Positions 32,776-54,865 of a stretch of 64,000 nt of DNA are shown here, piece after piece. The position numbers and the translations under genes are program-made. The notes under the pieces are model-generated. The model was not told the origin of the DNA. It did not search any database and saw nothing but the letters and a program-made list of their open reading frames with translations. This DNA comes from Hormiphora californensis. Lineage: Eukaryota > Animalia > Ctenophora. Position 1 is the stretch's first letter. Each line of letters opens with the position of its first letter. The stretch is taken from NCBI GenBank assembly GCA_020137815.1, contig CM035362.1, positions 4,712,001-4,776,000 of the forward strand. The letters are read 5' to 3'.

Positions 32776-34058
32776 TCACCGTATTCCAGAACAACATTCC
32801 TCGTGAAGATTTCTGGGTTTTCGGCTTGTAAATTTTTCCCCGCATATACTGCAAGGAAAAGGTTTCTCCCCAGTGTGTGTCATCATGTGCCGCTTCAAGT
32901 GACTCGTTTGGGTAAACGCCCTTCCACAGACCTCACATTTGAATCGACGCTCACCAGTATGAATCCTTTTGTGTCTTTTATAATTACTGATACGAGTAAA
33001 AGTCTTCTCACACACCTCACATTTAAAAGGTTTGATTCCACTATGTACCCGCTGGTGTAGATTCAGTTCCCTCCTTGTGTTGAAACTCATAGGACAAATA
33101 TCACACTGGAACTCCTTTTTTGGGTGTGCATTTTCAATGTGCTCGTACAACTCTGATTTAGGTAGTCTGACTCCACAATTTTTGACACGGCATGAAGTAA
33201 CAGTTTTTCTATGAACAAAGAATTGATGTTTATCTAAATTGTATTTCTGGAGAAAAGTTTTTCCACACCCCTTACATTCGTGTGGTTCGTATTCACTGTG
33301 ACCCAAATGGTGTTGAGTAAGATGCGAATCATACTTGAAAGCCATGGGACAAACATCACAGAAGTGTTTCCTATCAGGATGGTCGTCTCGAATGTGCTGA
33401 TACAAGTCCTTATCTGATGACTTCCAAACTGAGCAACTCCTGATTTTACACTGGAATAGTTTAGCACGTTTGATACACAGGATCATCCTCGTAGGTTTTA
33501 GTCTGGTTTTAAAAGTAGCCGGATCTTTAGGAAGGGATTGTTGGGAAGGAACTCGTTGTCGCTGGGAAAGAGGTGGATTTGCAGTGGTTGACTCAATTTC
33601 TTCACTAGAATCCTGTTTATTGAATTTATCTCCACCAGTTTGGATCGGAACACCTGTAGGATAGATGTGATAATCATTATTGGAAACCAACAAGGCTTTA
33701 TATATTAAACAATGATTTGATCAACTCTATCCACGTTAACTGTTGATAATGAAAATCTTTCTGATGAAAGGACTACTGAAGACTTGAAGATGTTGTAAAA
33801 TCTTCTAGTCATTAGTAGTGCACAGTTCGAATACCACCTGTATAAACATCACGCACAAAACTCACCATGATCTGAGGAAACCACATGTGATGGAGCATCA
33901 GATATTGGGCAGGGAGTAAACATCACAGGTTTGATGTCACTTTCCACATATATTGGTTCAGTTTTCAGAAGGGGAGGAATTTCAAACTGTTTACCAGTTT
34001 TCGTAGCAGGTTCTTCTGAACTACCAGTTCTAGATTTACCAGGTTTTCTTTTTGCCAT
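32776..34058 (-). CDS. C2H2 ZNF array gene (unit 12, MAK-type), exons 34058-33866, 33653-32776, ~356 aa, 8 fingers
   Basis: Shared exon FEIPPLLKTEPIYVESDIKP; TGEKP-type linkers; phase-1 intron. Confidence 0.9.
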
Positions 34059-34296
34059 TATATATCCTGTATGAAAATGGGAAAGTTTTGTTTTTAACAC
34101 TGTTTTAATAATGTTAAAACAGTGTCCCTGTCTTACAATATCTTTTATCAAGATTGGTATCAAGAATAACTGCATTATGTTCCATAATGCTATGTTTCCC
34201 TGCTCACCTTTATTTTCTAATGTGAAGGCGGGACAGATATTTTCGATCATTCATATTTCACTCAAATAGTATTTTGCTACTATGTAATAGAACAAA

Positions 34297-34757
34297 AGAG
34301 TGGACAGAATCAGAATTGAACAAGTTTGTTGGAGGCCGTAGAGATTAGTTCTACGAGCATTTTGAATTTTTGCCACTCAAAATCGACCCATCCATCACTG
34401 ATATATTTTTGTTACTCTCGGGCAATTCCTGCTGGGTCAATATTTATCAAACAGGATAGAAAAAATCCTTGTGTTTTACTAACAACTTCTATAAACTTTT
34501 AATATGCTGAATTGCATTGCTCTGCTTCTGTGTTTGGGCATGTCAAACTCACTGTTTATATTCAGAATGTGTTAGTAAAACACGACGATTGTTTCTATCC
34601 TGTTTGTTAAATACTGATTAAACAGGAATTCACCGAGAGTAACAAAAATATATCAGTGATGGATGGGTCGATTTTGAGCCAGAAAAAGGCAAAACGCCCC
34701 TAAAACTAATCTCTACAACCTTCAACAAACTTGTCCAATTCTGATTCTGTCCACTCT
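34297..34757. mobile_element. ~460-bp foldback MITE
   Basis: agagtggacagaatcagaatt...aattctgattctgtccactct with long inverted arms; no clear TSD. Confidence 0.8.
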
Positions 34758-34960
34758 CACTAAATTCACGCCACATCGCGGAATTGTGTGCCACACATTT
34801 TCTGAAAACATGCTAGTAAAATGGTTTATGAAAGAGCAGGTTGTTGATGCCCTTCGCAACCTGAAACGGGACATTGTAGGCGTACTTGCAACACATGGTC
34901 ACTATGTCCGTTACAGATTTTTAAACCACTATGCCTTTTTGCAAAAGGCATACGTGTGAC

Positions 34961-35177
34961 GGTGTGCGGACTCTAGTGCTAAAATAACGAAAAGAGAACC
35001 CGGGATTTTTCCCGTTTGGCCGGAAACGAGAGTTTGATGTGCCTCTATACTCGTTTAGAAGTGTTAGGGCCGTTATTTAAGCACGAGGTTAGGGTTTAGG
35101 GTAAAGGTTAGGGTTAGATATAGAGTCCTCCTTGGGTTTAGATATATAGAGTCCATTAGCACTAGAGTCCGCCTACC
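34961..35177. mobile_element. Small TIR element containing degenerate TTAGGG-like repeats
   Basis: TIR gcggactctagtgcta / tagcactagagtccgc; ggttagggtttaggggtaaaggttagggttag inside. Confidence 0.7.
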
Positions 35178-35355
35178 ACGTGTCGGGCGGGGAGAAATGG
35201 AAAAAGAAACCGGAGAAAACAAATAAATGAATAGTAAATTAATTACAAAGAAACTATGTGTTCATTTAACATACATAATTTAACGACACCGTTCTCTGAA
35301 AAGTTATTTTTGCAATTAAAATCAATTCATACAAAAAATGTCCATCGCTACTAAA

Positions 35356-37046
35356 TCATGAGTGTTTTTCTGAACATGTTGCTTCGTGAAGTAGCCTAGA
35401 ATCAGAACGAGGAAATGTTTTCCCACACTTACTGCAAGGAAATGGCTTCTCCCCAGTGTGAATTCGCATATGACTCTTCATGTTGCTTTTTAGAGTACAC
35501 GTCTTTCCACAGACCTCACATTTGAATGGACGCTCACCAGTATGAACCAGTTTGTGTCTTTTATGATTACTGAATTTAGTAAACGTCATTTCACACACCT
35601 CACATTTATAAGGCTTAATTCCACTATGTACCCGCTGGTGTTGAATCAGATCGCCGTTTCTTTTGAAACTCATCGGACAAATATCACACTGGAACTCCTT
35701 TTTTGGGTGTGCAGTTTCAATGTGCTCGTACAACTCTGGTTTAGTTAATCTTACTCCACAGTTTTTGACAGGGCACGAAACAATATTACCATGAAAAAGG
35801 ATCTGATGTCGATTTAAATTAATTTTACGGAAAAAGCTTTTTTCACACTCCTTACATTTGTGTGGTTTGTGTCCACTGTGGGCCAAATGGTGTTGAGTAA
35901 GATGCGAAACATGTGAAAAAAGCCATAGGACAAATATCACAGAAAAGTTTTCTATCAGGATGGTCTTCTCAAATGTGCTGATACAAGTCCTTCTCTGATG
36001 ACTTCCAAACTGAACAACCCCTGATTTTGCACTGGATGGCCGAATTTTGATCATTTCCTTCGACAAATCCCATAGAAATCAGTTTCCCTCGTTGATTACA
36101 TTCACCGCCAGGATGTTTTAGCTGAAAATCAATTTGACTTGAAGACTCGCCGAGATAAGCTTCTGGAACTTGATTCATTTCAGCTCCTTCGACGTTTTGG
36201 ATCTTCCCTGTAGATTTCATGCAGGGTTCTGTATTGTTGGGAGTGCTTTGCTGTTGAAGAATTTCTTGTTGCTGGTAAAGAGGGGGATCTGTTGACTCGT
36301 CTCCATCGAATTTAGAAATCGTATTATCTGAAAGAAAAGGGAGGATTAGATTTTCACTGACTATAAAATTATAATGAGATGAATGACAAAATTAGTAGTA
36401 GAATCTAAATATCACAATCTGAGTCAAAGTAAATTGACGGGGTGGTGCTGACGAACTCACCTTTATCAAAGAAAAGAGTCTCAACTGGTGGAACAGCGGA
36501 AATATCAGAAACTGAGTCATAGTAGAACGGATCAGCATCCACTGTCATTTCATGATCATCCAAACATCCATCCTCCAATTCAATAATTTCAGGAGCCTCT
36601 GATGGTGGATCAGTTGAAATGGGATGAACCGAGTCATAGTAAACAGGATCTATACTCTCTATCTTTACAGGATCCACTGCCATTTCATCACCCAAACATC
36701 CAACCTCAGATCCCAGTGTACTAGAACTTTCTGCTTGAATCTCGGGGACACTTGACCCAGTTTGAGTTCCAACTTCCACCAACTTGTCTGTTTTAACAAT
36801 TCTATACCCTGGATCTAGAAGACCACTACCTGATTTTCCACAACCATCACATGTGAATAAAATTAGATCATCATCTGTTCCTGAAACTGTTAAAATCTTG
36901 GAGACTGGACAGGGAGTGAAAATCGCAGGTTTGATGTCACTTTCCATGTATATTGGTTCGGTTTTCAGAAGGGGAGGAAGTTCAAACTTTCTACCAGTTG
37001 TCAATGAGACTGAATTACCAGATTCACCAGGTTTTTGGTATGCCAT
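35356..37046 (-). pseudogene. ZNF array gene (unit 11, long first exon) with a +1 frameshift in finger 2 (or an assembly error)
   Basis: Exons 37046-36461, 36327-35356; frame breaks at a T6 run (~35916-35921); removing one T restores CPMAFSHVSHL. Confidence 0.75.
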
Positions 37047-37150
37047 GATTTAACCTGCGAGAAAAGAAAACTTTAAAACAGTGGTAATTCCCTACACATA
37101 ATAGTTAGAAGGGATGGGAGGGAGGGAGGAAATAGTTAATAAACATAAAG

Positions 37151-37223
37151 TTTGGTGGCGCCGTCATTCAGGCCGTTTTGGCGCGCTACGCTCGTGAGTT
37201 GTAAGGGTGACTGCGTCACCAAA
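37151..37223. mobile_element. 73-bp MITE; deleted copy at ~43420-43470
   Basis: tttggtg..caccaaa termini, 7-bp direct repeat cataaag; present at the homologous position of both duplicated blocks. Confidence 0.7.
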
Positions 37224-37583
37224 CATAAAGTCAATGAATAGCACATTAAAAAAGGTCAAGTAAAGTCTAGTGCTTGACATTTAACCATGAACACTTTCTT
37301 TACTAATTCAATTCCACACTTATAATAGAGATTGTAGTCAATAATGTTCATAATACATATAATATCGCCATATAATTGTATTCAATACAATCCTGGGCAG
37401 GGTAACTCATGAAGACAGCGCTCTCCTCAGTAAACAAAGGGAAAGAGGGCAGCGCTGCTAGGATATATCCTTCGTTTTTAGTTAGTAAAAACACTTTATC
37501 GTCATTGAATGAGAGGATGTCTTTTCCTTCTCACTTGGGTGTCTTATTCACATGGCACACAGAGAGAAGATACAACGGTGCCC

Positions 37584-38469
<886 letters not shown>

Positions 38470-38711
38470 GATTTAACCTGCGAGTAGAGAGAACTTTAAA
38501 ACAGTGGTAATTCCCTACACATAATAGTTAGAAGGGATGGGAGGGAGAAATTAAACACAAAGTCAACAGACGGTACATAAAACAAGTGATAGTTTAGTAC
38601 TTGACATTTAACTGTTAAACGACCACCATAAAAACTTTCTTTGCTCATTCAGTCTTACAATTAAAAGTAAATTCCTGTCAAATGTTAAAAATCATATCGT
38701 GATAGACAATA

Positions 38712-39879
38712 CTACTTTCCTGAACATTTAGCCTCGTGAAGACGTCTATAAGAAGCCTGACTAAATGTTTTCATACACTTACTGCAAGGAAATGGTTTCT
38801 CTCCAGTGTGTGTCATCATGTGCCGCTTCAAGGAACTTGTTTGAGTAAATGCTTTTCCACAGACCTCACATTTGAATGGACGCTCACCAGTATGAACCAG
38901 TTTGTGCCTTTTATAATTACTTGACATAGCGAATGTCTTGCCACACTCCTCACATTTAAAAGATTTTATTCCACTATGAACATGTTGGTGTTTTACCAAG
39001 CTGTCATTCGCCATGAAACTCATAGGACAAATGTCACATTGGAACTCCTTTTTTTGGTGTGCAGTTTCAATGTGCTCGTACAATTCTGATTTCGGTAGTC
39101 TAACTCCACAATTTTTAACACGGCACAAAACGATATTGCCATGAACAAGGATCTGATGATGATTTAAACTATATTCAAAGGCAAAGCTGATTCCACACTC
39201 CTTACATTTGTGTGGTTTGTATCCACTGTGGGCCAGGTGGTGTCGAGTAAGATCCGAAGTTTGTAAAAAAGCCATGGGACAAACATCACAGAAGTGTTTC
39301 CTATCAGAATGGTCTTCTCGAATGTGCTGATACAAGTCCTTCTCTGATGACTTCCAAACTGAACAACGCCTGATTTTACACTGGAATAGTTTAGCACGTT
39401 TGATACACAGAATCATCCTGGTAGATTTTAGTTCGGTTTGAAAAGTAGCAGATTCTTTAGGAAGGGATTGTTGGGAAGGAACTCGTTGTCGCTGGGAAAG
39501 AGGTGGATTTGTAGTGGCTGACTCTCCTTCTTCACTAGAATCCTGTTTATTGAATTTCTCACCTCCAGTTTGGATCGGAACACCTGCAGGATATATTTAC
39601 AATGATTAGATGCAATAATTAGTATTAAAAGAAAAACCAAACGGGTTATTGATTATTAGATCAACTTCCACAATTGGCAAACTCACCATAATCTGAGGAA
39701 ACCACATTTGATGGGACATCAGAAATTGGGCAGGAAGTAAACATCTCAACTTTGATGTCATTTTCCACGTATATTGGTTCGGTTTTCAGAAGGGGAGGAA
39801 TTTCAAATTGTGGTTCAGATTTTACGACAGGTTGTTCTGAACTACCAGTTCTTGTTCTACCAGGTTTTCTTTTTGCCAT
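38712..39879 (-). CDS. ZNF array gene (unit 9, MAK-type), exons 39879-39687, 39583-38712, ~354 aa
   Basis: Shared first exon plus 8 fingers; frame intact. Confidence 0.9.
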
Positions 39880-40091
39880 TGTATGTCCTGCATGAAAAAA
39901 TGGGAGTGTTGACAAAAAAGTGTTACTGACTCACAATATCTTTTATCAACATGAGTGAAAGTGATAGGGGAGCGGAGAAATAGACGCAGAGTGAATGATA
40001 AAAATTATTATGATTTATAAAAAGTGCATCAAACACGTTAATATCACTCTCACAGTCACTCTATGGGTCAGTTCAGCTGTCTTCGCTCATG

Positions 40092-41566
40092 TCATCTGAA
40101 TCGGGAATCACAATCAGAGTCTGACAGCCAATCATTTTCCCATTCACCATCAGAGTTCTCAACATCAGCACAAACCATTCCTTCATCATCACTGGGGCAG
40201 GGGGAAGAGTCGAGAGCCGGTGGCTCGGGTGTTTGGTTTGCAGCAGGATGATCAGGTAAAGGAGGAAGAACTCGGGAGGGTGCTGGTCGCCGCGAAATGA
40301 GAGATCCTCCTGTTGCCAAGGGGTCTCGAAAGTGGCCAGTGACTGGATCGGTATTGGGAAGAGCATGGATATCCTTCCTGAATACGAGACGACTTTTGCC
40401 GGCAATCTCAGGATTAGACACTTTGGAAACACTCTGCTCAGTGAACACACCCAAGAAGAAATGATCAGTACACACACGGGCTGCTGGGCCAGGTACCCAC
40501 TTGTCTCTCTTCAAACGTAAAGCCCATCTCTTTTTCTGATTAACGTCTCGGGGGAAAGGCATGTACCGTAGGAAGGTTCGCCCAGTGATCTTGCTGCAAT
40601 TGTCGGTAGCTGACCTATTGTTACAACCATATGCAACACAACAAGAGCCACCCTTTTTTGGGTGTGAAGTTTCAATGTGCTTGAACAACTCTATTTTAGG
40701 TAATTTAACTCCACAATTTTTAACACGGCACAAAATGATATTGCATTTAACAAGGATCTGATGTTGGTGTAAAAGACATTTAAATGCAAAGTTTTGTCCA
40801 CACTCCTTACATTTGTGTGGTTTGTATCCACTGTGACCCAAATGGTGTTGAGTAAGATGCGAAACATGCTTGAAAGCCATTGGACAAACATCACAGAAGT
40901 GTTTCCTATCAGGATGGTCGTCTCGAATGTGCTGATACAATTCCTTATCTGATGACTTCCAAACTGAACAACTCCTGATTTTACATTGGAATATTTTAGC
41001 ACGTTTCCGGTTTAGTCCATCACAGTCCAGTGTAGTAGCCGTTTCTTTAGGAAGAGATTGTTGGGAAGGAACTCGTTGTCGCTGGGAAAGAGGTGGATTT
41101 GCAGTGGTTAACTCAATTTCTTCACTAGAATCTTGTTTATTGAATATCTCTCCTTCAGTTTTGATCGAAACACCTGTAGGATAGATGCGATAATCATTAT
41201 TGGAAATTAAACCAACAAGGCTTCAAATCAATGATTTGATCATGAACAAATGAATACAACTATTCACAATTCTTGATACTATATTATCTAATTCTTATAC
41301 AGAACTACTGAAGACTCAAAGATGTTATAACGTCTTCCAGTCTCTAGTATTCCATACCAGGCATGAATATCACCTCAAAACTCACCATAATCTGAGGAAA
41401 CCACATTTGATGGAGCATCAGATATTGGACAGGGAATAAACATAACAGGTTTGATGTCACTTTCCATATATATTGGTTCGGTTTTCAGAAGGGGAGGAAT
41501 TTCAAACTTTCTACCAGTTGCCAATGAGACTGAATTACCAGATTCACCAGGTTTTTGATCTGCCAT
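40092..41566 (-). CDS. Chimeric ZNF-THAP gene (unit 8): shared exon, fingers 1-4, in-frame THAP domain; exons 41566-41386, 41173-40092, ~420 aa
   Basis: After finger 4 (..HIETSHPKK) the sequence switches at ~40651 to GGSCCVAYGC..PFP..RW..W.P...VCTDHF..ALPN, a THAP C2CH signature. Confidence 0.85.
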
Positions 41567-41799
41567 AATTTAACCTGCGAGAAGAGAAAACTTTAAAACA
41601 GTGGTAATTGCCTATGCATAATAACTAGAAGGGAGGGGGAAGTAGAAAATAAACAAAAAGTCAATGGACAGAACATTAAATAAGTGAAAGTTAAGTACTT
41701 GGCATTTCACCACCATAAACACTTTCTTTATCCCTTCTATTTCACCTTTTAAAATTAAATTGCTGTCAAATGTTCATAAAAAACATATCATGGAAATCA

Positions 41800-43349
41800 T
41801 TACTCCTTTCCTGAACATTTAACCTCATGAAGACGTCTTAAAGAAGCCCGTGTATATTGTTTCCCACACTTACTGCAAGGAAATGGTTTCTCACCAGTGT
41901 GAGTGCTCATGTGACGCTTCAAGGAACTTGTTTGGGTAAATGCTTTTCCACAGACCCCACATTTGAATGGACGCTCACCAGTATGAACCAGTTTGTGTGT
42001 TTTATAATTAGATATTTGAGTAAACGACTTCTCACACACCTCACAAGCAAAAGGTTTGATTCCATTATGTATCCGCTGGTGTTGATTCAATTCCTTGTTT
42101 GTGTTGAAACTCATCGGACAAATATCACACTGGAACTCCTTTTTTGGGTGTGCAGTTTCAATGTGCTCGTATAAATCTTCCTTAGGTAATCTAACTCGAC
42201 AGTTTTTCACACGGCACATAACAATACTGCTATGAACAAGGATCTGATGTTGATGTAAATCAGATTTATGCAGAAAGCTTTTTCCACACTCCTTACATTT
42301 ATGTGGTTTGTATCCACTGTGACCAAGATGATGTTGAGTAAGATCCGAAACTTTCTTGAAAGCCATAGGACAAACGTCACAAAAGTGCTTCCTATCAGGA
42401 TGGTCTTCTCGAATGTGCTGATACAAGTCCTTCTCTGATGACTTCCAAACTGAACAACCCTTGATTTTACACTGGATGGCTGAATTTTGATCATTTCCTT
42501 CGACAAATCCCATAGAAATCAGTTTCCCTCGTTGATTACATTCACCGCGAGGATGTTTTAGCTGAATATCAATTTGACTTGAAGACTCGCCGAGATAAGC
42601 TTCTGGTACTTGATTCATTTCAGCTCCTTCGACGTTTTGGATCTTCCCAGTAGATTTCATGCAGGGTACTGGATAGTTGGGAGTGCATTGCTGTTGAAGA
42701 ATTTGTTGTTGCTGGTGATGAGGGGGATATGTTGACTCGTCTCCATCGAATTTAGAAATCGTATTATCTGAAAGAAGAGGGAGGATTAGATTTTCACTGA
42801 CTATAAAATAATGATGAGATGAATGACAAAATCAGTAGTAGAATCTAAATATCACAATCTGAGTATTGACGGGGTGGTGCTGACGAACTCACCTTTATCA
42901 AAGAAAAGAGTCTCAACTGGTGGAACAGCGGAAATATCAGAAACTGAGTCATAGTAGAAGGGATCAGCATCCATCTTTACAGGATCCACTGCCATTTCAT
43001 CACCCAAACATCCAACCTCAGATCCCAGTGTACTAGAACTTTCTGCTTGAATCTCAGTATCACGTGACCCAGTTTGAGTTCCAACTTCCACCAACTTGTC
43101 TGTTTTAACAATTCTATACCCTGGATCTAGACGACCACTACCTGATTTTCCACAACCATCACATGTGAATAAAATTAGATTATCCTCTGTCCCTGAAATC
43201 TTGGAGACTGGACAGGGAGTGAAAATCGCAGGTTTGATGTCATCTTCCATGTAGATTGGTTCGGTTTTCAGAAGGGGAGGAATTTCAAACTTTCTATCAG
43301 CTGTCAATGAGACTGAATTACCAGGTTCACCAGGTTTTTGGTCTGCCAT
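41800..43349 (-). CDS. ZNF array gene (unit 7, long first exon), exons 43349-42893, 42767-41800, ~474 aa
   Basis: Shared motif plus extension (FTCDGCG..VEVGTQT) plus 8 fingers; frame intact. Confidence 0.88.
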
Positions 43350-43821
43350 GATTTAACCTTCAAGAATAGAGAATTTTAAAATTGTGGTAATTGACTACAC
43401 ATATATATTTAGAAGGGAGTTTGGTGGCGCCGTCACTCAGGCCGTTTTGGCCCGCTACGCTCGTCACCAAACATAATTCATAAAGTCAATGAATAGCACA
43501 TAAAAAAGGTCAAGTAAAAGTCTAGTGCTTGACATTTAACCATGAACACTTTCTTTACTAATTTAATTCCGCACTTATAATAAATTATAGTCAATAATGT
43601 TCATAATACATATCGCCATAATATTATTATATCAATACAATCCTTGGTTAATGAAGACAGCGCTCTTCTCAATAAACAAAGGGAAAGAGGGAAGCGCTGC
43701 TAAAGGATATATCCTTCGATATTAGTTAGTAAAAACACTTTATCGTCATTGAATGAGAGGATGTCTTTTCCTTCTTTCTTGGGTGTCTTATGGCACACAG
43801 AGAGAAGATACAACAGTGCTC

Positions 43822-44090
43822 CTAACATTCTTCTTTCTTTCCTTTCGCCTGTGAAAAGTTAACGGCAAGGTTTTCATCTGGGTTACAAGAAGGACCGCCG
43901 GACTAAGGTCCAAGATGTGAGATGCGGAGGGTGGTAGATTGATAGAAACAAAAAAAAAAGAAGAAGAACAATTCGAGAAAATAAAACTTACTTCAAGGAA
44001 GGCTATACGCTTTTTCAATCTCTGAATCTCTTCCTCCTTCGTCTCTTGTCGGTCCTCTTCCGCTTGTCGGTCTCTCAACCGCTGTCGCTG

Positions 44091-44177
<87 letters not shown>

Positions 44178-44694
44178 CAAAATACCTTTAATTTGGCCTG
44201 GAACATCTCATTTATTATTTCCATTGTTTCCCCCATCTTCTCCGCACACACCTCATCTAGGGATTTCCCCTCTCTCTTTGCCTTAGATCTTGCTAAGGCC
44301 ATCACTGTCGCCACGAAAGTCTCGGTCTCTTTACAAGCTTTCGCCTTTTCTGAATGGAGATGAAAGAGGAGACTATACGAAAAGAAAGAAATAATTCTGA
44401 GAAGATAGATTCTAATTAAGGAATACTGAAGACTTGAAGAAGTCTTCAGCAGTCCTTAATTAACTTTATTTGTAACATCAAGTAGTTGGGTTTTTGAACA
44501 GCTCAAAACTCACCATAATCTGAGGAAACCACATATGATGGAGCATCAGATCTTTGACAGGGAGTAAACATTACAGGTTTGATGTCATCTTCCATGTATA
44601 TTGGTTCGGTTTTCAGAAGGGGAGGAATTTCAAACTTTCTACCAGTTGGCAATGAGACTGAATTACCAGATTCACCAGGTTTTTGGTATGCCAT
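43822..44694 (-). CDS. Finger-less array member (unit 6): shared exon plus helical/coiled-coil module
   Basis: Paralog of 37584-38469 with the same splice sites; ends AKGKKEEC*. Confidence 0.78.
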
Positions 44695-44961
44695 GAATTA
44701 ACCTGCAAGTAGAGAGAACTTTGAAATAGTGGTAATTCCCTACATATAATAGTTAGAAGGGAGGGGAGGGAGGAAATAAACACAAAGTCAATAGACAGCA
44801 CATAAAACAATTAGTGAAAGTTAAGAACTTGACATTTAACTTATGTTTAAAGAGTCTTTTAAAAAGACCATCATAAACACTTTCTTTGCTCATTCAGTTT
44901 TACAATTAAAATTAAATTGCTGTCAAATGTTTATATGAATCATATATCGTGATAGTCAATG

Positions 44962-46205
44962 CTAGTTTCCTGAACAATTAAACTCATGAACACGTCTATA
45001 AGAAGCCTGACTAAATGTTTTCATACACTTACTGCAAGGAAATGGTTTTTCCCCAGTGTGTGTCCTCATGTGCCGCTTCAAGCTACAATTTAGAGTAAAT
45101 GATTTTTCACAGACATCACATTTGTAAGGACGCTCACCAGTATGAACCAGTTTGTGTCTTTTATAAGTACTGATACGAGTAAACGACTTATCACACACCT
45201 CACATTTAACAGGTTTAATTCCAGTATGTATCCGTTGGTGTTGAATCAGATGGTAGTTTGTTTTGAAACTCATAGGACAAATATCACACTGGAACTCCTT
45301 TTTTGGGTGTGCACTTTCAATGTGCTTGTACAACTCTGGCTTAGGTAGTCTTACTCCACAATTTTTAACACTGCACAAAATGATATTGCATTTAACAAGG
45401 ATCTGATGTTGGTGTAAATCATAATTAAGACCAAAACTTTTTCCACACTCCTTACATTTGTGTGGTTTGTATCCACTGTGACCAAGATGATGTTGAGTAA
45501 GATGCGAAACTTGCTTGAAAGCCATGGGACAAACATCACAGAAGTGTTTCCTATCAGGATGGTCTTCTCGAATGTGCTGATACAAGTCCTTCTCTGATGA
45601 CTTCCAAACTGAACAACTCCTGACTTTACACTGGAACAGTTTAGCACGTTTCCGGTTTAGTCCATCACTGTCCTGTCCAGTAGCCGTTTCTTTAGGAAGG
45701 GATTGTTGGGGAATAACTCGTTGTCGCTGGGAAAGAGGTGGATTTGCAGTGGTTGACTCAATTTCTTCACTAGAATCCTGTTTAATGTTTATTGGATATA
45801 TCTCTCCTTCAGTTTTGATCGGAACACCTGTTGGATAGATGTGATGATTATTATTGGAAATGAAACCAACAAGGCTTCAAAACAATGAATTGATAATGAA
45901 CAAATGAATACAACTATTCACAATTCTTGATACTAATATATTATCTAATTGTTATACAGGACAACAAAGATGTTAGTAGCCCATAGTTAAAATACCAGGT
46001 ATGAATATCACGCTCAAAACTCACCATAATCTGAGAAAACCACATTTGATGGAGCATCAGATATTGGGCAGGGAGTAAACATTACAGGTTTGATGTCATC
46101 TTCCAAGTATATTGGTTCGGTTTTCAGAAGGGGAGGAATTTCAAACTTTCTACCAGTTGGCAATGAGACTGAATTACCAGATTCACCAGATTTTTGGTAT
46201 GCCAT
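44962..46205 (-). CDS. ZNF array gene (unit 5), exons 46205-46025, 45827-44962, ~348 aa
   Basis: Shared first exon plus 8 fingers. Confidence 0.9.
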
Positions 46206-46595
46206 GAATTAACCTGCAAGTAGAGAGAACTTTAAAACAGAGATAATTGCTTACACATATAATTAGAAGGGAGGGGAAGGAGGAAGTAAACACATAGTCA
46301 AAAGACAACTCATATAACAAGTGAAAGTTAAGTACTTGACATTAAACTTATGTTAAAAGACCACTACAAACACTTTCTTTGCCCATTAATTTAAAATTAA
46401 AAGGAAATTGCTGTCAAATATTCATTAAAAATACATATCGTGATAGTCAATACTACTCTCCCGAGAATTAACTTCAATACTTTATTGTCGATTGGGCACG
46501 ATCGAGCTCAATCGAACCAAGAGCAGCAACAAAGTGAAACAAGTTCCACTCAACAGATCTTTGTGATCGAAACATTTGTTTGGAACTAACTTGTT

Positions 46596-49499
46596 TCACT
46601 TTGTTTGTTGTTGTGAACAAAATTTAACTTCATGAAGAAATCTATCAGAAGCCAGTTTATAATTTTTTCCACATTTAATGCAAGGAAATTGTTTTTCCCC
46701 AGTGTGTGTCCTCATGTGATTCCTCAAAATATTTGTTCGAGCAAATAGTTTTCCACAGACCTCACATTTGAATGGACGCTCACCAGTATGGATTCTTTTG
46801 TGTTTGCTTAAATTAGTCGATGCTGCAAACTTCTTACCACATTCCTCACAAGTGTAAGGTTTAACTCCACTATGGGTCCTCCGATGGACATTTAAAGTGG
46901 CGATTTTTTTGAAACTCATAGGACAAATATCACACTGGAACTTCTTTTTTGGGTGTACATTTTCAATATGCTCGTATAACTCTGATTTTGGTAGTAAAAC
47001 TCCACAGTTTTGGAAACGGCAGGAAATAATGATATCGCTACAATGAATTCGCAGATGTCGATTCAGATCATTTTTACAGACATAGCTTTTTTCACATTCC
47101 TTACATTTGTGTGGTTTGTATCCACTGTGACCAAGATGATGTTGAGTAAGATGCGAAACTTTCTTGAAAGCCATGGGACAAACATCACAGAAGTGTTTCC
47201 TATCAGGATGGTCTTCTCGAATGTGCTGATACAAGTCCTTCTCTGATGACTTCCAAACTGAACAACTCCTGATTTTACAGTGGAATAGTTTAGCACGTTT
47301 CCGGTTTAGTCCATCACAGTCCAGTGAAGTAGCTGATTCTTTAGGGAGGGATTGTTGGGAAGGAACTAGTTGTCTCTGGGAAAGAGGTGGATTTGCAGTG
47401 GCTGACTCAATTTCTTCACTAGAATCTTGTTTATTGGATATCTCTCCTTCAGTTTTGATCGGAACACCTGTAGGATAGATGCGATGATTATTATACAACT
47501 AAGTATTCACAATTCTTGATACAGTCGGACCCCGATTTAGGGCCCCCCGATTTAGTGGCACCCCGATTTAGGGACAGGATTTTTTTCCCCCGATATAGGA
47601 AATTAACCTTATTTGACCCCGATTTAGTGGACACCCCGATTTAGTGGACAAGAGCCTTCCCCCGAGGGTGTCCCTAAATCGGGGTCCAACTGTACTATAT
47701 CTAATTCTTATACAGAACTAATGAAGACTCAAAGATGTTACAGTCGGACCCCGATTTAACGGCCCCCGATTTAGCGGCACCCCGATTTAACGGCAGGATA
47801 AATTTCCCCCAAAATTTTTTCCTTGCCCGGGTGAATGCCGAAGGCATTCACACGGATGATCTTTTTAGCACACACGTGCTAAAAAGATCATTCAGGGTTT
47901 AGAAATCAGCAGATCGTGGAGTTAACTAAAAGTGTCCGTCCGTCCGTCCGTCCACCGTTACAAATAGTAACAAAGTCTGCTCCTTCATAAAACTTTCAGC
48001 TCACACTTTGTTGATGCAACAAGGAAATGATTAACACGCACTGTGGCGCGCAAATACTCACTCGTATCACTTCCTACTTTCACCTGAAATCACTTTGGGT
48101 ACCCTACAGCCGTACCATGACGTGGTAGCAAGTCTTTGAAGCATGAAACTACTATCATACAATAATTGTAAGTGACTGGAGTTAAGATGAGTGTACAGTT
48201 GAAGCACTTGGTAACCAACTAGGGTCTCCTAAGCAACTCTCTTGGTTATCATCGCAACTACCTTGGTTACCATAGCAACTGCTTTGATTACCATAGCAAC
48301 CACCCTGGATACCATAGCAACTAACATCGTATCAGCCAAAAATTGCTCTTTGAGTGCAAAATCCATCGGAAAATCCCGTTTTGAAGCTTAGTCATCAATT
48401 TTACACCCATCTGGGGCAGGAAAACACCGCATTATGAATACATAATGCAATAATTCTTGTTTGAAATTTTTTTTGAAATTTTTTTTTGAAATTTTTTTTA
48501 TGAAATTTTTTTTGAAATTTTTTTTGAAAAACCGGGTCCGAATCGTGTTTCGAATCGGTGCATCTTATTGCATGCCTTGCCGGTAAGACGGTTCGAAACG
48601 AACAGATATGTGATCCCCATGAGGCCCATCGAATCGCAATTTTATGACGCTTGTTAAACTGGCCTCATGGGGATCAGGTATCGGTTCGTTTCGAACCGTC
48701 TTATTAGCAACAGGACGTGCGATAAGATGCACTGATTCGAAACACGATTCGGACGTGGTTGATATACCTTTGAAAAATTTCCATAACTTTTTTTGCAAAA
48801 TTTTACAGAATGATTGTCAACACTTTGCTCGGTGCTCCCCATGAATTTTCAGAGAAAAATATATTTTGAAATTCAAATTCTTCCTCACCCCGCTTAAAGT
48901 GCCCCGATTCGGCATGGTATCACGTATCGGTTCGTCTAATTAGCAGCAAGACATGCGATAAGATGCACTGATTCGATAAACGATTCGGACGTGGTTGATA
49001 TAGTACCTTAGAAAATTTTTATAACTTATTTTGAAATTATTTTGAAATTACTTTCTTTTTCTAATCAGAAATGATCATGTAATCAATACATGGACATTGC
49101 ATTTAACACTTAGAGGTGTTTTAGTATAGCATTTTGGACAAAAATAGGGTTTTATGGGCCAAATATGCTCTACCCCGATTTAACGGACACCCCGATTTAA
49201 CGGACAAAACCCTTTCCCCCGAGGGTGCCGTTAAATCGGGGTCCGACTGTATAACGTCTTCCAGTCTCTAGTAGTCCATAGTTAAAATACCAGGCATGAA
49301 TATTACCTCAAAACTCACCATAATCTGAGGAAACCACATTTGATGGAGCATCAGATATTGGGCAGGGAATAAACATAACAGGTTTGATGTCACTTTCCAT
49401 ATATATTGGTTCGGTTTTCAGAAGGGGAGGAATTTCAAACTTTCTACCAGTTGTCAATGAGACTGAATTACCAGATTCAACAGGTTTTTGGTATGCCAT
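46596..49499 (-). CDS. ZNF array gene (unit 4), exons 49499-49319, 47467-46596; intron expanded by two TA-target insertions
   Basis: Shared first exon plus 8 fingers; intron homologous to paralog introns once the insertions are removed. Confidence 0.88.
47522..47692. mobile_element. Tc1/pogo-type MITE family B
   Basis: TA duplication confirmed against the empty paralogous site aattcttga-TA-ctat (e.g. ~50701). Confidence 0.92.
47741..49249. mobile_element. Family-B MITE carrying ~1.25 kb internal cargo (Helentron/DINE-like features)
   Basis: TIRs cagtcggaccccgatttaacgg; TA TSD confirmed by the empty paralog site aaagatgt-TA-taacg; cargo begins with two perfect hairpins (47831-47851, 47857-47890) and (GTCC)n at 47934-47953. 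Confidence 0.85.
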
Positions 49500-49732
49500 G
49501 AATAAACCTACGAGAATAGAAAACTTTAAAAAAGTGGTAATTGCCTGTGCATAATAACTAGAAGGGAGGGGGAAGTAGAAAATAAACAAAAAGTCAATGG
49601 ACAGAACATTAAATAAGTGAAAGTTAAGTACTTGGCATTTCACCACCATAAACACTTTCTTTATCCCTTCTATTTCACCTTTTAAAATTAAATTGCTGTC
49701 AAATGTTCATAAAAAACATATCATGGAAATCA

Positions 49733-51009
49733 TTACTCCTTTCCTGAACAATTAGCCTCGTGAAGACGTCTATAAGAAGCCTGACTAAATGTTTTCATAC
49801 ACTTACTGCAAGGAAATGGTTTCTCTCCAGTGTGGGTCCACATGTGCCAATTCAAGGCAACTTTTTGGGTAAATGCTTTTCCACATACCTCACATTTGAA
49901 TGGACGCTCACCAGTATGAATCCTTTTGTGTACACTACACTCAGCTGATGTTTTAAACGTCTTACCACATATTCCACAAGTGAAAGGTTTAACTCCACTA
50001 TGTACTCTCCGATGGACACTTAAATTGTATTTTGATTTGAATGATTTAGGGCAAATATCACACAGGAACTCCTTTTTTGGGTGTGCAGTTTCAATGTGCT
50101 TATACAACTCTGTTTTAGGTAATCTAACTCCACAATTTTTGACACGGCACGAAACGATATTGCTATGAACAAGGATCTGATGTTTATGTAAATTAGATTT
50201 CTGGAGAAAACTTTTTCCACACTCCTTACATTTGTGCGGTTTGTATCCACTGTGACCCAGATGGTGTTTAGTAAGATGCCAGACTTGCTTGAAAGCTATG
50301 GGACAAACATCACAGAAGTGTTTTCTATCTGTGTGGTCGTCTCGAATGTGCTGATACAAGTCCTTATCTGATGACTTCCAAACTGAACACCCCTTAATTT
50401 TACACTGAAATAGTTTAGCACGTTTGATACACAATATCATCCTGGTAGGTTTTAGTCTGGTTTTAAAAGTAGCCGGATCTTTAGGAAGGGATTGCTGGGA
50501 AGGAACTCGTTGTCGCTGGGAAAGAGGTGGATTTGTAGTGGCTGACTCAATTTCTTCACTAGAATCCTGTTTATTGGATATCTCTCCTCCAGACTGGATC
50601 GGAACACCTGTAGGATAGATGTGATAATCATTATAAGAAACCAACAAAGCTTCAAATTAATGATTTGATCATGAACAAATGTATATAACTACCTATTCAC
50701 AATTCTTGATACTATATTATCTAATTCTTATACAGAACTAATGAAGACTCAAAGATGTTATAACGTCTTCCAGTCTCTAGTAGTCCATAGTTAAAATACC
50801 AGGCATGAATATCACCCTCAAAACTCACCATAATCTGAGGAAACCACATTTGATGAAGCATCAGATATTGGGCAGGGAATAAACATAACAGGTTTGATGT
50901 CACTTTCCACATAGATTGGTTCGGGTTTTAGAAGGGGAGGAATTTCAAACTGTCCACCAGTTCTCAATGAGACTGAATTACCACATTCACCAGGTTTTTG
51001 GTCTGCCAT
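49733..51009 (-). CDS. ZNF array gene (unit 3), exons 51009-50829, 50607-49733
   Basis: Shared first exon plus 8 fingers. Confidence 0.9.
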
Positions 51010-51272
51010 GAATTAACCTGCGAGAAAAGAGAAATTTAAAATATTGGTAATTGCCTACGCCCTACACATCATAATATAATAAGAGTGGAGGGGGGACGAG
51101 GAAATAAACAAAAAGTCAGTATACAGTACATATGTAATAACAAGTAATAGTTTAGTACTTGACATTTAACTGATGTTAAAACACCACCATAAAAACTTTC
51201 TTTGTCCATTCAGTTTAACAATTAAAATAAAATTGCTGTTATGTTCATAAAATCATATAATCATGTAATTCA

Positions 51273-52538
51273 TTACTCCTTTCCTGAACAATTAACCTCA
51301 TGAAGACGTCTTACAGAAGCCCGTATATATTGTTTCTCACACTTACTACAAGAAAATGGTTTCTCCCCAGTGTGGGTCCTCATGTGATGCTTCAAGGAAC
51401 TTGTTTGAGTAAATGCTTTTCCACAGATCTCACATTTGAATGGACGCTCACCAGTATGAATCCTTTTGTGTTTTCTACAGTCAGACGATGATGCAAACTT
51501 TTTACCACATATTCCACAAGTAAAAGGTTTAAGTCCACTATGTATCCGCTGGTGTTGAATAAGATTGTAGTTTGATTTGAAACTCATAGGACAAATATCA
51601 CACTGGAACTCCTTTTTTGGGTGTGCAGTTTCAATGTGCTCGTACAACTCTGGTTTAGGTAATCTAACTCCACAATTTTTAACAGGGCACGCACACGAAA
51701 CAATATTGCTATGAACGAGGATCTGATGTTGATTTAAATGAATTTTACGAAGAAAACTTTTTTCACACTTATTACATTTGTGTGGTTTGTATTCACTGTG
51801 GGCAAAATGGTGTTTAGTAAGATCCGAAACTTGCTTGAAAGCCATGGGACAAACATCACAGAAGTGTTTTCTATCAGGATGGTCGTCTCGAATGTGCTGA
51901 TACAAGTCCTTATCTGATGACTTCCAAACTGAACAACTCCTGATTTTACAGTGGAATAGTTTAGCACGTTTCCGGTTTAGTCCATCACAGTCCAGTGTAG
52001 TAGCTGATTCTTTAGGAAGGGATTGTTGGGAAGGAACTCGTTGTCGCTGGGAAAGAGGTGGATTTTTAGTAGTTGAATATTCACTTGAATACTGTTTATT
52101 AAATATCTCTCCTTCAGTTTTGATCGGAACACCTGTAGGATAGATGCGATAATCATTATAAGAAATTAAACCAACAAGGCTTCAAATTAATGATTTGATC
52201 ATGAACAAATGTATACAACTACCTATTCACAATTCTTGATACTATGTTATCTAATTCTTATACAGAACTAATGAAGACTCAAAGATGTTATAACGTCGTC
52301 CAGACTCTAGTAGTCCATAGTTAAAATACCAGGCATGAATATTACCTCAAAACTCACCATAATCTGAGGAAACCACATTTGATGGAGCATCAGATATTGG
52401 GCAGGGAATAAACATAACAGGTTTTATGTCACTTTCCACATATATTGGTTCGGTTTTTAGAAGGTGAGGAATGTCAAACTTTCTACCAGTTGTCAATGAG
52501 ACTGAATTACCAGGTTCACTAGGTTTTTGGTCTGCCAT
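51273..52538 (-). CDS. ZNF array gene (unit 2), exons 52538-52358, 52132-51273
   Basis: Shared first exon plus 8 fingers. Confidence 0.9.
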
Positions 52539-52784
52539 GATTTAACCTGCGAGAATAGAAAACTTTAAAACAGTGGTAATTTCAGATTACACATATAATT
52601 AAAAGGGAGGGGAGGGAGAAAATAAAAACTAAGTCAATATTAGACAACAAATAAAACAAATGAAAGTTAAGTACCTGACATTTAACTTATGTTAAAAGAA
52701 CATCATAAACACTTTTTTGCTCATTCAGTTTTACAATTAATATTAAATTGCTGTCTAAGGCTAATAAAAACCATATAGTGATAG

Positions 52785-54865
52785 TCAATACTTATTTCCT
52801 GAACAATTAACCTCGTGCAGACGTCTAACAGAATTCTTACTAAATGATTTCACACACTTACTGCATGGAAATGGTTTCTCCCCGGTATGTGTCCTCATAT
52901 GACTTTTTAAACTACTTTTTTCAGTAAATGTTTTTCCACAAACCTCACATTTGAATGGACGCTCACCAGTATGAATCTTTTTGTGTCTGCTGCAGTCAGA
53001 TGATGTTTTAAATGTCTTACCACATTTATCACAAGTGAAAGGTTTTACTCCACTATGTATTCTCCGATGGTCATTCAAATGTTGATTCGTGTTGAAACTC
53101 AAGGGACAAATATCACATTGGTACTCCTTTTTTGGGTGTGCACTTTCAATGTGCTTGTACAACTCTGCCTTAGGTAATCTAACTCCACAACTTTTGACAC
53201 GGCATGAAATAATATTGCTATGAACAAGGATCTGATGTTGATTTAAATGAATTTTACGAAGAAAATTTTTTCCACACTCCTTACATTTGTGTGGTTTGTA
53301 TCCACTGTGACCAAGATGATGTTGAGTAAGATCCGAATCTTGCCATGGGACAAACATCACAGACAAACATCACAGAAGTGTTTCCTATCAGGATGGTCGT
53401 CTCGAATGTGCTGATACAATTTTTCCTCTGATGACTTCCAAAGTGAGCAACCCCTGATCTTACACTGCAGTTTATGGGAGCTTGGATTAGCGTCATTTTT
53501 ATCGATCATGATAGCCATAGAAGTATGTTCTCTTTCTTGATTGACCCTGCTACCAGAAGATTTTTGTTGTAAAACTGTTTGTTTCTGAATTGAAGGTTCA
53601 ACGAAAGTAGACTTTGGATCTGGATAAAGTCTGGCTCGTTTGCTAGTGGATGAAGTTGTAGCTCTAGAATATGATTTTTCAGAAAGCTGGGGAAGAATTT
53701 GTTGTTGCTGGGGAAAAAGAGGCAGAATTGGTAATTTAGAAATAGCTTCCTCTCCATCTGAGTCTGAATTTCTATCGCCATCTGAAAATGAAATGGAGGA
53801 TAAGAATCGAATATGTATTGATCAGACAAAGCAAGCTTTGATTAAAATTGAATAATCGGATCTGAAATGAAACATCAAACATGAGTAGTATGCTCCCTCT
53901 CAAACTTACCCTTATCTAAAGAACCATCACCCAATGGTGGATCAGTTGAAATGGGAGGAACTGAGTCATAGTAAAACGGATCAGCATCCATCTTTACAGG
54001 ATCCACTGTCATTTCATGCTCCAAACATTCAACCTCAGATCCCAGAGTACTAGAAGTTTCTACTTGAATCTCGGCATCACGTGACCCAGTTTGAGTTCCA
54101 ACTTCCACCAACTTGTCTGTTTTAACAATTCTATACCCTGGATCTAGACGACCACTACCTGATTTTCCACAACCATCACATGTGAATAAAATCAGATTAT
54201 CCTCTGTCCCTGAAACTGTTAAAATCTTGGAGACTGGACAGGGAGTGAAAATCGCTGGTTTAATTTCATCTTCCATGTAGATTGGTTCGGTTTTCAGAAG
54301 GGGAGAAATTTCAAACTTGCTTCCAGCTGTCGTGACATGCTGTTCTGAACTATCAGTTCTGGTCGTTCCAGGTTTACTTTTTGCCATTGTATTTCCTGTA
54401 TGGAATAAAGAAATTGAATTGTGCGGAGCACGGTCAGAGTGTCAGGCGCCTCAATACATATGAATAGAATTCGAATGTGAGATTCCAACTATTACCCGGT
54501 GTATCTGGAGGGTCTTGTTGAGTTGGTGTGATGGAGAGGGTCGATGGGGCATCACTGTGAGGCGTTGGTGTAACACCGACAATGCCAAGGTCTCCATACA
54601 GAAGGTCTGGAATGGCCCCCTTGACCAACTTCAACGTTGCACAATCTGTTAAAAGAGTTTTTAGTAAACAAAATTCCTTATGTATGATTTTTCCTTGACA
54701 AAATAGCAAGAAAGCCAACTGACCTGAAAAATTTCTAGCAGAGAAATGCTCAGAACATATCTTGCTAGACTTTGTGACAGGACCCGGCAGCTTGGGTAAC
54801 CAATCCGCCCGCATACCAAATAAGGTGGCGCACACTGTGGTCCTTCCACAAATAAAACATGGCAT
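52785..54865 (-). pseudogene. Array head gene (unit 1): THAP exons (54865-54724, 54645-54496), shared exon (54395-53910), ZNF exon (53781-52785) frameshifted in finger 2
   Basis: MPCFICG..LFGM..W..P..KICSEHF../..LVKGAIP is a THAP domain; phase-1 splice runs in frame into GNTMAKSKP; a 13-bp duplication plus small deletion at ~53340-53372 breaks the frame. Confidence 0.72.

Follow-up and report, generated by a model that had tools for sequence, protein, structure and literature searches.

The window analysed here, a 64,000-nt stretch of DNA from the ctenophore Hormiphora californensis, contains twelve copies of a short protein motif, all of them on the minus strand and none on the plus strand. 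Each copy lies in a homologous exon that starts with an ATG, encodes F-E-I-P-P-L-L-K-T-E-P-I-Y, and ends at a phase-1 donor. This exon opens each of twelve units (u1 to u12), and neighbouring genes are spaced by 212-472 nt. An AG acceptor is found 8 nt upstream of every ATG. In the first coding exons, all given on the minus strand, the higher coordinate marks the ATG. Nine of them are of a short type with 181 or 193 nt and end with ..GAT TAT G|GTGAGT (phase 1), namely those of u2 (52358-52538, 181 nt), u3 (50829-51009), u4 (49319-49499), u5 (46025-46205), u6 (44514-44694), u8 (41386-41566), u9 (39687-39879, 193 nt, MAK start), u10 (38289-38469), and u12 (33866-34058, MAK start). Long first exons of 152-195 codons, with about 90-150 additional residues, are found in u1 (53910-54387; MAK start, blocks A, B, and C), u7 (42893-43349, 152 codons), and u11 (36461-37046), the latter being a copy of u7 that carries an additional acidic repeat. 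They stop at a homologous phase-1 donor (..DK|G GTGAAT). ATG positions, donors, and profile matches confirm the proposal of the initial annotation that twelve minus-strand units share one exon followed by a phase-1 intron.

The general gene model consists of two coding exons, which encode an N-terminal region (N-region) and, after the phase-1 intron, a linker with a fixed array of eight fingers. A finger exon follows the first exon in ten units and small helical exons follow it in the other two. This split into C2H2 and helical units had been described before and holds, but two finger exons are broken and one encodes a chimera of four fingers and a THAP domain. The seven intact finger exons, each with six canonical and two atypical C-x4-C fingers, belong to u2 (51273-52132), u3 (49733-50607), u4 (46596-47467, after an intron 1 of 1.85 kb), u5 (44962-45827), u7 (41800-42767, acceptor ..cttctttcag|AT), u9 (38712-39583), and u12 (32776-33653). 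In u1 (52785-53781), finger 2 is disrupted by a TGA (53357-53359) and a frameshift, and in u11 (35356-36327) an in-frame TGA (35969-35971) interrupts finger 1, again with a frameshift. Since the acceptor ..tatcctacag|GTGTTCCGATC is common to seven short units, the split codon encodes Gly, and V-P-I-K/Q-T comes next. The exon joins were drawn from the splice-site consensus, from the conserved phase, and from a single gene model of Pleurobrachia bachei (P0020).

Exon 2 of u8 (40092-41173) encodes the linker and fingers 1-4, followed downstream of about position 40652 by the in-frame THAP domain (Pfam E = 2.7e-8). In the finger-less units u6 and u10, the first exon is followed by three small ones, which span 54, 32, and 8 codons and have canonical splice sites. 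These are located at 44186-44349, 43992-44087, and 43822-43848 (with the stop) in u6, where a (TC)n intron separates the first two, and at 37961-38124, 37744-37839, and 37584-37610 in u10. The blocks of u6 and u10 are about 93% identical. As this identity extends through the non-coding DNA, both units result from one recent segmental duplication. The notion of interchangeable modules is thus not borne out: the window shows duplication of whole genes in tandem, one deletion-fusion with THAP, and the single capture of a helical fragment, which was duplicated later. The family has grown by tandem and segmental duplication, while copies were lost, as the two broken ones show, and chimeras with THAP and helical sequences were made. 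Just upstream of u1, within the span of the initial annotation but separate from the twelve units, lies a degenerate THAP-like ORF on the minus strand (54434-54883), whose THAP match (E = 0.11) is below the cut-off.

A profile of the shared exon has 52 or more matches in the genome, which are clustered as had been expected, with E-values down to 1e-39; chance similarity of the exon is thereby excluded. A family-specific probe for fingers 1-2 yields about 55 full-length matches. No match to the N-region was found in Pfam, among PDB sequences, in the Atlas, or with Foldseek at E <= 0.001, in agreement with the earlier view that the exon encodes no known domain. Searches of 1.84e9 representatives gave 20 matches, and of the ten looked up, five were P. 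bachei models and five marine ENA contigs. Among 5.8e9 proteins, 10 matches were obtained, 9 of them from P. bachei. The suspected restriction to one lineage is supported by these results, in which only P. bachei and marine contigs match, and the motif and the N-region, judged by these comparisons, appear not to have been described before. P. bachei keeps the same architecture, and in a protein tree its members are interleaved among the subfamilies without a species-specific burst.

In the family as a whole, the common form of the N-region is long, with the same phase-1 donor and the conserved blocks A, which is the motif, and B, a small CxxC β-module. The short exon of the window is a deletion derivative of this longer region and not, as initially assumed, the defining unit of the family. 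The motif has an invariant core of 16 residues, [KR]-F-x-I-P-x-L-L-K-T-E-[QP]-I-x-V-E. This core persists in the short type, from which block B is missing, so that nature has provided a deletion test of the core's autonomy. An AF2 model shows no secondary structure in the core, as expected for a linear motif.

Selection acts differently on the parts of these genes. DNA-contact codons of the fingers have a dN/dS of 2.19, compared to 0.32 for non-contact codons and 0.20 for the atypical finger 4. In four independent sister pairs, nonsynonymous and synonymous changes amount to 99:13 at contact sites versus 216:134 elsewhere (Fisher p = 2.8e-8), and the contact pN of 0.44 exceeds the regional pS of 0.30 (p = 1e-5). 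Four pairs from other clusters point in the same direction (82:22 versus 222:138, p = 0.001). Thus, positive selection diversifies the residues by which the six canonical fingers contact bases, and these residues outpace synonymous sites. Purifying selection acts on the motif core (dN/dS 0.30), which lies between near-neutral flanks (1.25 and 0.90); together, exon 1 flanks and linker range from 0.74 to 1.25. In the 5' half, dS is 0.09-0.27 and the intron 1 distance 0.22, while dS is about 0.5 in the fingers, and nearest neighbours by 5' module are not those by finger array. Recombination or gene conversion homogenises these 5' halves between the genes.

Judged from its residues, the core fits two short motifs linked to repression, the SUMO acceptor site psi-K-x-E and the eh1/Groucho-type sequence F-x-I-x-x-L-L. 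The SUMO consensus that had been pointed out is present as residues: L-K-T-E occurs in eleven of the twelve units (u3 has L-K-P-E), I-K-T-E at the start of exon 2 in u2, u4, u5, and u8, and V-K-I-E in u11. Up to three psi-K-x-E positions, including that of the core, are conserved in the N-region and are occupied in 25/25, 14/25, and 9/25 aligned sequences. Altogether, 49 sites were counted in these 25 N-regions versus 4.2 expected from shuffles, although a psi-K-x-E match carries little information and the N-regions, being relatives, do not provide independent counts. In the units of the window, the second site is lost (I-K-P-V/A) and the third weakened (V-K-M-D). The explanation that we favour, with roughly even credence, is that the array is a cluster of a ctenophore C2H2 transcription-factor family, so far found in Pleurobrachiidae only, and that the core is a putative repressive motif acting most likely via SUMO. 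The core would be an autonomous short linear motif that turns these proteins into repressors. Most likely, SUMO would be attached at the psi-K-x-E lysine, and SUMO-dependent co-repressors could then be recruited to whichever sequence the fingers read. Synergy-control motifs with the consensus P-x0-4-[IV]-K-x-E-x0-3-P, reportedly described by Iniguez-Lluhi and Pearce in 2000 as SUMO-dependent and tied to repression, resemble the window units in their proline-flanked psi-K-x-E (P-P-L-L-K-T-E-P) and in having several copies per regulatory region. In contrast to these, psi is Leu and not Ile or Val in the ctenophore motif, half of the family has Gln in place of the trailing Pro, and SUMO modification is putative.

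A shared N-terminal motif combined with fast-changing DNA-reading residues is a pattern known from KRAB zinc-finger proteins of tetrapods and from FiNZ genes of carp-family fish. With the KRAB family, the ctenophore genes share effector exon(s) followed by a single finger exon, tandem clusters with birth-and-death evolution, and rapid change at finger positions -1, 2, 3, and 6. However, Pfam detects no KRAB domain in the ctenophore family, its candidate effector is a linear motif instead of a folded KRAB-A box, finger number is fixed at eight whereas it varies in KRAB proteins, and no counterpart of the TRIM28 partnership is assigned. The initial comparison to a KRAB-like effector family is therefore upheld for layout, clustering, and selection on contact residues, but not for the fixed finger number and the lack of a species-specific burst; for the same two reasons, the data do not demonstrate an arms race with transposons. 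In cyprinid fish, FiNZ genes number about 700 in zebrafish, and their knock-down derepresses transposons (Wells et al. 2023, PMC10547256). Both families have a short lineage-specific N-terminal sequence without similarity to known domains, encoded in one exon before a single finger-array exon, and both are large and clustered with positive selection in the fingers. The lineages are unrelated and the likeness, by description, is one of architecture and evolution. The ctenophore family is smaller (about 50-70 genes), its finger number is fixed, and its N-region, in the ancestral form, has a greater length of 117-175 residues and contains the CxxC β-module. ZAD proteins of insects are likewise clustered C2H2 genes with a lineage-specific N-terminal module. 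Block B has a CxxC pair like that in half of a ZAD, but a ZAD has two and the ctenophore N-region only one that is conserved; block B is missing altogether from the short type, and zf-AD (PF07776) gave no Pfam match in the family.

Around its lysine, the core also conserves F, I, P, T, and I, none of which is needed for a minimal SUMO site, and this points to a docking surface. The resemblance to eh1 had not been considered in the initial annotation. Possibly, then, though this is on balance rather doubtful, F-x-I-x-x-L-L docks in the WD40 pore of a ctenophore Groucho/TLE protein and represses, with the lysine being incidental or a docking switch. In 61 distinct instances of the family, F is found in 58, I and L/F-L in all 61, and the full pattern in 56, with I and L-L belonging to the anchor by which the instances were collected. 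From residue frequencies, chance occurrence of the pattern is estimated to be about 15 times rarer than that of psi-K-x-E. On the other hand, the resemblance to this already known motif was spotted post hoc, position 2 is E, D, or V and never the usual S/T, and Pro occupies position 4 in 59 of 61 instances and often position 5 too. In the TLE1-eh1 complex, reportedly solved by Jennings et al. in 2006, this site is a short helix, whereas the AF2 model has no helix at the core. The published consensus is FS[VI]xx[IL][LM] with F or Y first, and Groucho candidates have been reported for Mnemiopsis and P. bachei (PMC4943189). A search of the genome for TLE_N gave no match, but neither did the search controls. 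C2H2 repressors of bilaterians such as ces-1 and Odd/Bowl also have F-x-I-x-x-[IL]-[LM] outside the fingers, in ces-1 near the N-terminus as in the ctenophore family (Copley 2005, PMC1310626). Those are single conserved developmental genes and not an expanded cluster, and the ctenophore motif differs by its Pro at position 4 and its fusion to a psi-K-x-E site. No association of eh1 with C2H2 was found in non-bilaterians (Copley 2016, PMC4943189).

Compared to a SUMO-linked repressor family, it is unlikely that these are ordinary lineage-specific transcription factors without a link to transposons, in which the motif would have a role in nuclear import, turnover, or partner binding and the contact residues would have diverged by ordinary subfunctionalisation of duplicates. 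The fixed eight-finger scaffold with its two conserved atypical fingers would agree with this, as would subfamilies that are older than the split from P. bachei and include at least one pair that looks like 1:1 orthologues (L040_3984/P0025, support 97/99). The basic start M-A-K-R-K resembles a nuclear localisation signal, but the short type has replaced it by M-A-D/Y-Q-K-P and kept the core. Moreover, dN exceeds dS at the contact sites of young pairs, beyond relaxed constraint, and the 52 or more clustered copies, pseudogenes among them, match the picture of birth-and-death families.

That the array is mostly decaying, unexpressed duplicate DNA with non-functional gene models is very improbable. 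Two of ten finger exons are broken, two units are finger-less, the exon 1 flanks and the linker evolve near-neutrally, and the sole listed RNA run contained next to none of the stretch. Against this, open eight-finger frames are kept in seven units, non-contact finger codons, finger 4, and the core are constrained, conserved splice sites and phase recur in every unit as well as in other clusters, and P. bachei retains the architecture. Least credible of all is a lola-like locus in which a single constant 5' exon would be joined, by cis- or trans-splicing, to a choice of many finger exons: cross-unit joins would remain in frame because all donors and acceptors are phase 1, but a shared constant exon is unnecessary because an ATG exon with a separate upstream acceptor lies 100-1850 nt upstream of each finger exon, and both u6 and u10 end in terminal exons of their own that contain the stop.

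The twelve minus-strand units u1 to u12 (window 32776-54387, numbered from the high-coordinate end) belong to a real, previously undescribed, and lineage-restricted family of effector-zinc-finger (effector-ZNF) genes with KRAB/FiNZ-like evolutionary behaviour, whose proposed mechanism and targets are inferences. Effector plus zinc-finger families are represented by KRAB in tetrapods, ZAD in insects, and FiNZ in carp-family fish, and the ctenophore family bears on the question whether the effector-ZNF design arises wherever poly-zinc-finger genes expand. Its modest size, about 50-70 genes, and its setting in a non-bilaterian genome of 110 Mb make it a small and uncluttered case.

The initial annotation had placed a shared motif exon at the head of all 12 units, and this was borne out by a six-frame scan of the window for P-P-L-L-K-T-E-P-I-Y with up to three substitutions, which returned exactly 12 copies, all on the minus strand, one per unit and none elsewhere. 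All copies lie inside ATG-initiated exons, and an AG acceptor is found 8 nt before each ATG. Nine of the 12 first exons are of a short type (181 or 193 nt) and end in phase 1 with ..GAT TAT G followed by the donor GTGAGT. The long first exons of u1, u7, and u11 (152-195 codons) part from the short type after D-I-K-P; here ..F-F-D-K or ..S-L-D-K precedes a donor of identical phase, and the phase-1 intron described earlier is predicted for both types. Seven short units have in common the acceptor ..tatcctacag followed by GTGTTCC, with Gly as the junction residue and V-P-I-K/Q-T behind it. Searches, alignments, and dN/dS counts all treated each exon separately.

The earlier count of ten units continuing into a C2H2 exon and two into a helical module holds, but the ten are not equivalent. 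Intact minus-strand 8-finger exons are present in seven units (u2, u3, u4, u5, u7, u9, and u12); their scaffold consists of six canonical and two atypical C-x4-C fingers, and the exon of u12 matches the C2H2 families PF13465 (E = 2.2e-38) and PF00096 (E = 1.6e-24). In u8, four fingers are fused in frame to a THAP domain (PF05485, E = 2.7e-8, 34.9 bits vs a cut-off of 23.9), and the finger exons of u1 (stop and frameshift in finger 2) and u11 (stop in finger 1 and a frameshift) are broken. The finger-less units u6 and u10 carry three small K/E/R-rich exons of 54, 32, and 8 codons. The THAP domain of u8 directly follows finger 4 (window 40092-40652, minus), and a degenerate THAP-like ORF (54434-54883, minus, E = 0.11) lies just upstream of u1; each is located immediately upstream of a unit whose first exon has an M-A-K start. 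From stop to next ATG, nine of ten gaps within window 32776-54387 measure 212-472 nt, and AATAAA/ATTAAA is missing from seven of these nine. Such close spacing of units recalls an operon and would be compatible with trans-splicing of a spliced leader. One RNA run from 2015 yielded only matches of 24-35 nt, all on conserved finger-linker DNA.

The u6-u7 block and the u10-u11 block share about 93% identity, which extends through introns and spacers, and u6 and u10 are therefore regarded as the product of one recent segmental duplication and not as independently preserved finger-less paralogs. Because an 85%-identical copy of the first helical exon is found on contig C12, this exon looks like a captured fragment. 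The intron between two helical exons is filled by a long (TC)n microsatellite (window 43350-44520 and 37047-38295), and the two copies of the block disagree by 23 nt in its length.

The family extends well beyond the window. A profile built from the 12 first exons (A1) detected at least 52 places in the 110.7-Mb, 45-contig assembly, with clusters at 4.13, 4.75, 5.09, 5.17, and 6.04 Mb of contig C13, which contains the window (C13:4712001-4776000), and at 1.04 and 2.05 Mb of C7, and with singletons on seven other contigs. Among the loci examined, which represent part of the family and cover several clusters in part, the first exon is usually long, with 117-175 codons. The long N-region encoded by it begins with a basic M-A-K-R-K start, followed by block A ([KR]-F-x-I-P-x-L-L-K-T-E-[QP]-I-x-V-E .. 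I-K-P-E-I .. P-C), block B (N-x-I-x-F-x-C-x-G-C-G-x-S-G ... G-Y-R-L-V-K-T-A-x-L-V-E-V-G-T-Q-T-G) and, in some members, block C (D-P-V-K-M-E .. D-P-F-Y-Y-D-S-V-P), and it ends with ..V-V-S-S-D-N before the same phase-1 donor. As block A and the last dozen residues are kept and blocks B and C are missing, the short exon of the window is regarded as a deletion derivative. Pleurobrachia bachei, too, has pieces of the short type, in protein P0011 and in the G-V-P-V-Q-T-E-G linker of protein P0025.

A family-specific probe for fingers 1-2 gave about 55 full-length matches in the genome and also matched more distant clusters without a detected N-exon, at C13:1.316-1.321 Mb, C7:2.025-2.031 Mb, and C3:5.666-5.674 Mb (39-51% identity to the finger 1-2 signature). 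These either have more diverged N-regions or are relatives without an N-region. In most finger exons, a second match to the probe was observed about 250 nt downstream (36-42% identity), for example at window 49976-50152 and 50228-50410, which suggests that the scaffold of eight fingers arose when a unit of an atypical C-x4-C finger plus canonical fingers was duplicated internally.

The effector motif had been described as unnamed, and database searches agree with this. Neither short nor long first exons matched any Pfam family at E <= 1, KRAB (PF01352) and zf-AD (PF07776) included, and the N-region had no match among PDB sequences or in Atlas. An AF2 model of the long N-region is poor overall (mean pLDDT 58.9); it contains a small five-strand beta region formed by block B (residues ~48-90, pLDDT 72-79), and block A is extended and unstructured. 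Foldseek returned nothing from the PDB at E <= 0.001 for this model, and weak zinc-ribbon-like rows above that value were discounted as evidence. When A1 was searched with hmmsearch against 1.84 billion representatives, 20 matches were obtained, ten of which were looked up; P. bachei models and ENA contigs of 545-895 nt account for five each. When the N-region of P. bachei protein P0020 was compared with 5.8 billion proteins in a word-indexed search, 10 matches were obtained, 9 of them from P. bachei. The sole named relatives of the studied proteins are P. bachei models, in keeping with the lineage restriction proposed before. These models are fused or truncated, and the A1 profile can help to improve gene annotation in ctenophores. 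A ctenophore effector-ZNF family was not found described in the literature, and ctenophores are unmentioned by Wells et al. 2023 (PMC10547256).

A conserved, apparently unstructured core of 16 residues persists without block B and is attached to finger arrays with diversifying specificity residues. This core, [KR]-F-x-I-P-x-L-L-K-T-E-[QP]-I-x-V-E of block A, would act as a repression motif, and two known motif classes fit it. The first is the SUMO consensus psi-K-x-E, which the initial annotation had noted within the motif as LKTE. A candidate site 1 is present as L-K-[TS]-E in 25/25 long N-regions and as L-K-T-E in 11/12 window units, u3 having L-K-P-E. In the window units it is flanked by prolines, as in synergy-control motifs. 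Site 2, [IV]-K-x-E, follows 11 residues after site 1 in 14/25 long N-regions, and site 3, V-K-M-E in block C, is found in 9/25. In total, these 25 N-regions contain 49 psi-K-x-E motifs vs 4.2 expected from shuffles.

According to the second reading, the core is an eh1-type Groucho-binding motif, defined as FS[VI]xx[IL][LM] with F or Y as first residue (PMC4943189). The pattern F-x-[VI]-x-x-[IL]-[LM] is kept in 56/61 distinct family instances, in the form F-x-I-x-x-L-L, and the extra conservation around the lysine keeps this reading alive, but position 2 is never S/T and position 4 is a near-invariant Pro. Groucho candidates have been reported in ctenophores (PMC4943189); in this genome a search for TLE_N came up empty, but so did its controls. 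SUMO is ranked over eh1 because three separate conserved sites agree. Since the two motifs overlap, one can conceive of a docking motif that is switched by modification of its lysine. No eh1-C2H2 association was reported in non-bilaterians by Copley 2016 (PMC4943189), and a true eh1-type core would be the first. In the model, block B has one conserved CxxC, placed in a beta hairpin, through which, as a guess, a zinc-mediated dimer might form. The invariant 16-residue motif is amenable to tethering and point mutants, and long and short N-regions provide a natural deletion series.

Selection was assessed by pooled Nei-Gojobori counts for seven window paralogs. The DNA-contact positions -1, 2, 3, and 6 of the six canonical fingers have a dN/dS of 2.19, compared with 0.32 at other positions of these fingers, 0.20 in atypical finger 4, and 0.54 in atypical finger 1, where dS is only 0.09. 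In four phylogenetically independent sister pairs, nonsynonymous to synonymous differences amount to 99:13 in contact codons, compared with 216:134 in the remainder (Fisher p = 2.8e-8), and contact pN exceeds regional pS (0.44 vs 0.30, binomial p = 1e-5). The direction is the same in four pairs taken from other clusters (82:22 vs 222:138, p = 0.001). The family has thus expanded in clusters within its lineage, and its DNA-contact residues are under positive selection, as in KRAB/FiNZ families. Neutral evolution of the first exon (dN/dS about 1), considered in the earlier reading as evidence against an effector, is approached by its flanks (N-terminal part 1.25, tail 0.90) but not by the 26-codon core (0.30); the linker has 0.74.

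In exon 1 and linker, dS is 0.21-0.27, close to the intron 1 distance of 0.22, compared with about 0.5 in the fingers. This lower 5' dS, together with nearest neighbours that are not the same for 5' module and finger array and the presence of the short-type start M-A-D-Q-K-P in the long-type u7, indicates that paralogs have swapped or homogenised their 5' halves, with a boundary at the nearly invariant finger 1. In a protein tree of finger arrays, sequences from a fragmentary P. bachei sample interleave among subfamilies, one cross-species pair is well supported, and the window paralogs form a polytomy. The proposed likeness to KRAB-ZFPs therefore stands as to clustering, lineage restriction, and selected contact residues, but a recent species-specific burst, sought in this tree, was not shown.

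Membership of the KRAB or ZAD families is ruled out because both domains are absent. KRAB-ZFPs are characterized by the KRAB domain, TRIM28/KAP1 recruitment, and H3K9me3 transposon silencing, and ZAD-ZNF proteins have two CxxC pairs in contrast to the single conserved CxxC of block B. FiNZ-ZNF proteins feature a 28-residue sequence (PMC10547256); the comparison with them covers the gene layout, which matches. Because every finger exon comes with an ATG exon of its own, a lola-type alternative-exon locus is rejected, and mere junk is excluded by seven open frames and purifying selection at scaffold positions. Nothing was seen for a transposon-borne origin of the units, which are plain head-to-tail tandem repeats.

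That Pleurobrachiidae independently evolved an effector-ZNF family for genome defence appears rather unlikely as a complete proposal. In it, a compound linear motif, in which a Groucho dock of eh1 type and a SUMO-acceptor lysine overlap, would be a switchable repression module, and positive selection would let the eight-finger arrays keep up with transposons. If true, the KRAB/FiNZ strategy would have arisen convergently a third or fourth time, here in what may be the sister lineage of all other animals.

Exon 2 of long-type members outside the window (for example at L034:5870-, L042:5446-, and L039:6988-) opens with a highly conserved acidic stretch, ..S-S-S-E-D-D-M-M-L-G-L-T-D-E..S-D-S-S-E-E-E, which is missing from all window units and resembles a phospho-regulated SUMO-interaction motif. 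At locus L045 (C10:3938001-3948000, minus, 1876-5393), a divergent N-region exon (4869-5393) precedes at least five ORFs/exons repeating a ~60-residue C-x2-C ... H-x4-5-H module, and three of these ORFs end like the N-exon with ..E/D-D-G before the donor. The module has 0 Pfam matches, one ENA relative, and only weak leads in Atlas (zf-BED / zf-C2H2_12). From this arrangement, the N-region may also pair with a non-C2H2 finger type. At locus L044 (C11:256001-266000, minus, 3920-4969), a singleton N-region exon has three psi-K-x-E sites and no finger exon within 4.4 kb downstream; the 154-residue ORF after it adds I-K-E-E and I-K-T-E motifs.

Neither the copia-like nor the LINE elements beside the array reveal anything about finger targets. 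On the plus strand at window 16161-20431, two neighbouring ORFs (119 and 1305 residues) have the appearance of an intact gag-pol from a copia-type LTR retrotransposon, with a CCHC knuckle, integrase-like and RT-like stretches, and a ..H-V-D-D-I-L.. motif. On the minus strand at 56396-60825, a LINE-like pair comprises an upstream ORF of 455 residues with CCHC knuckles, overlapped by a 1032-residue ORF2 with the look of an endonuclease and reverse transcriptase.
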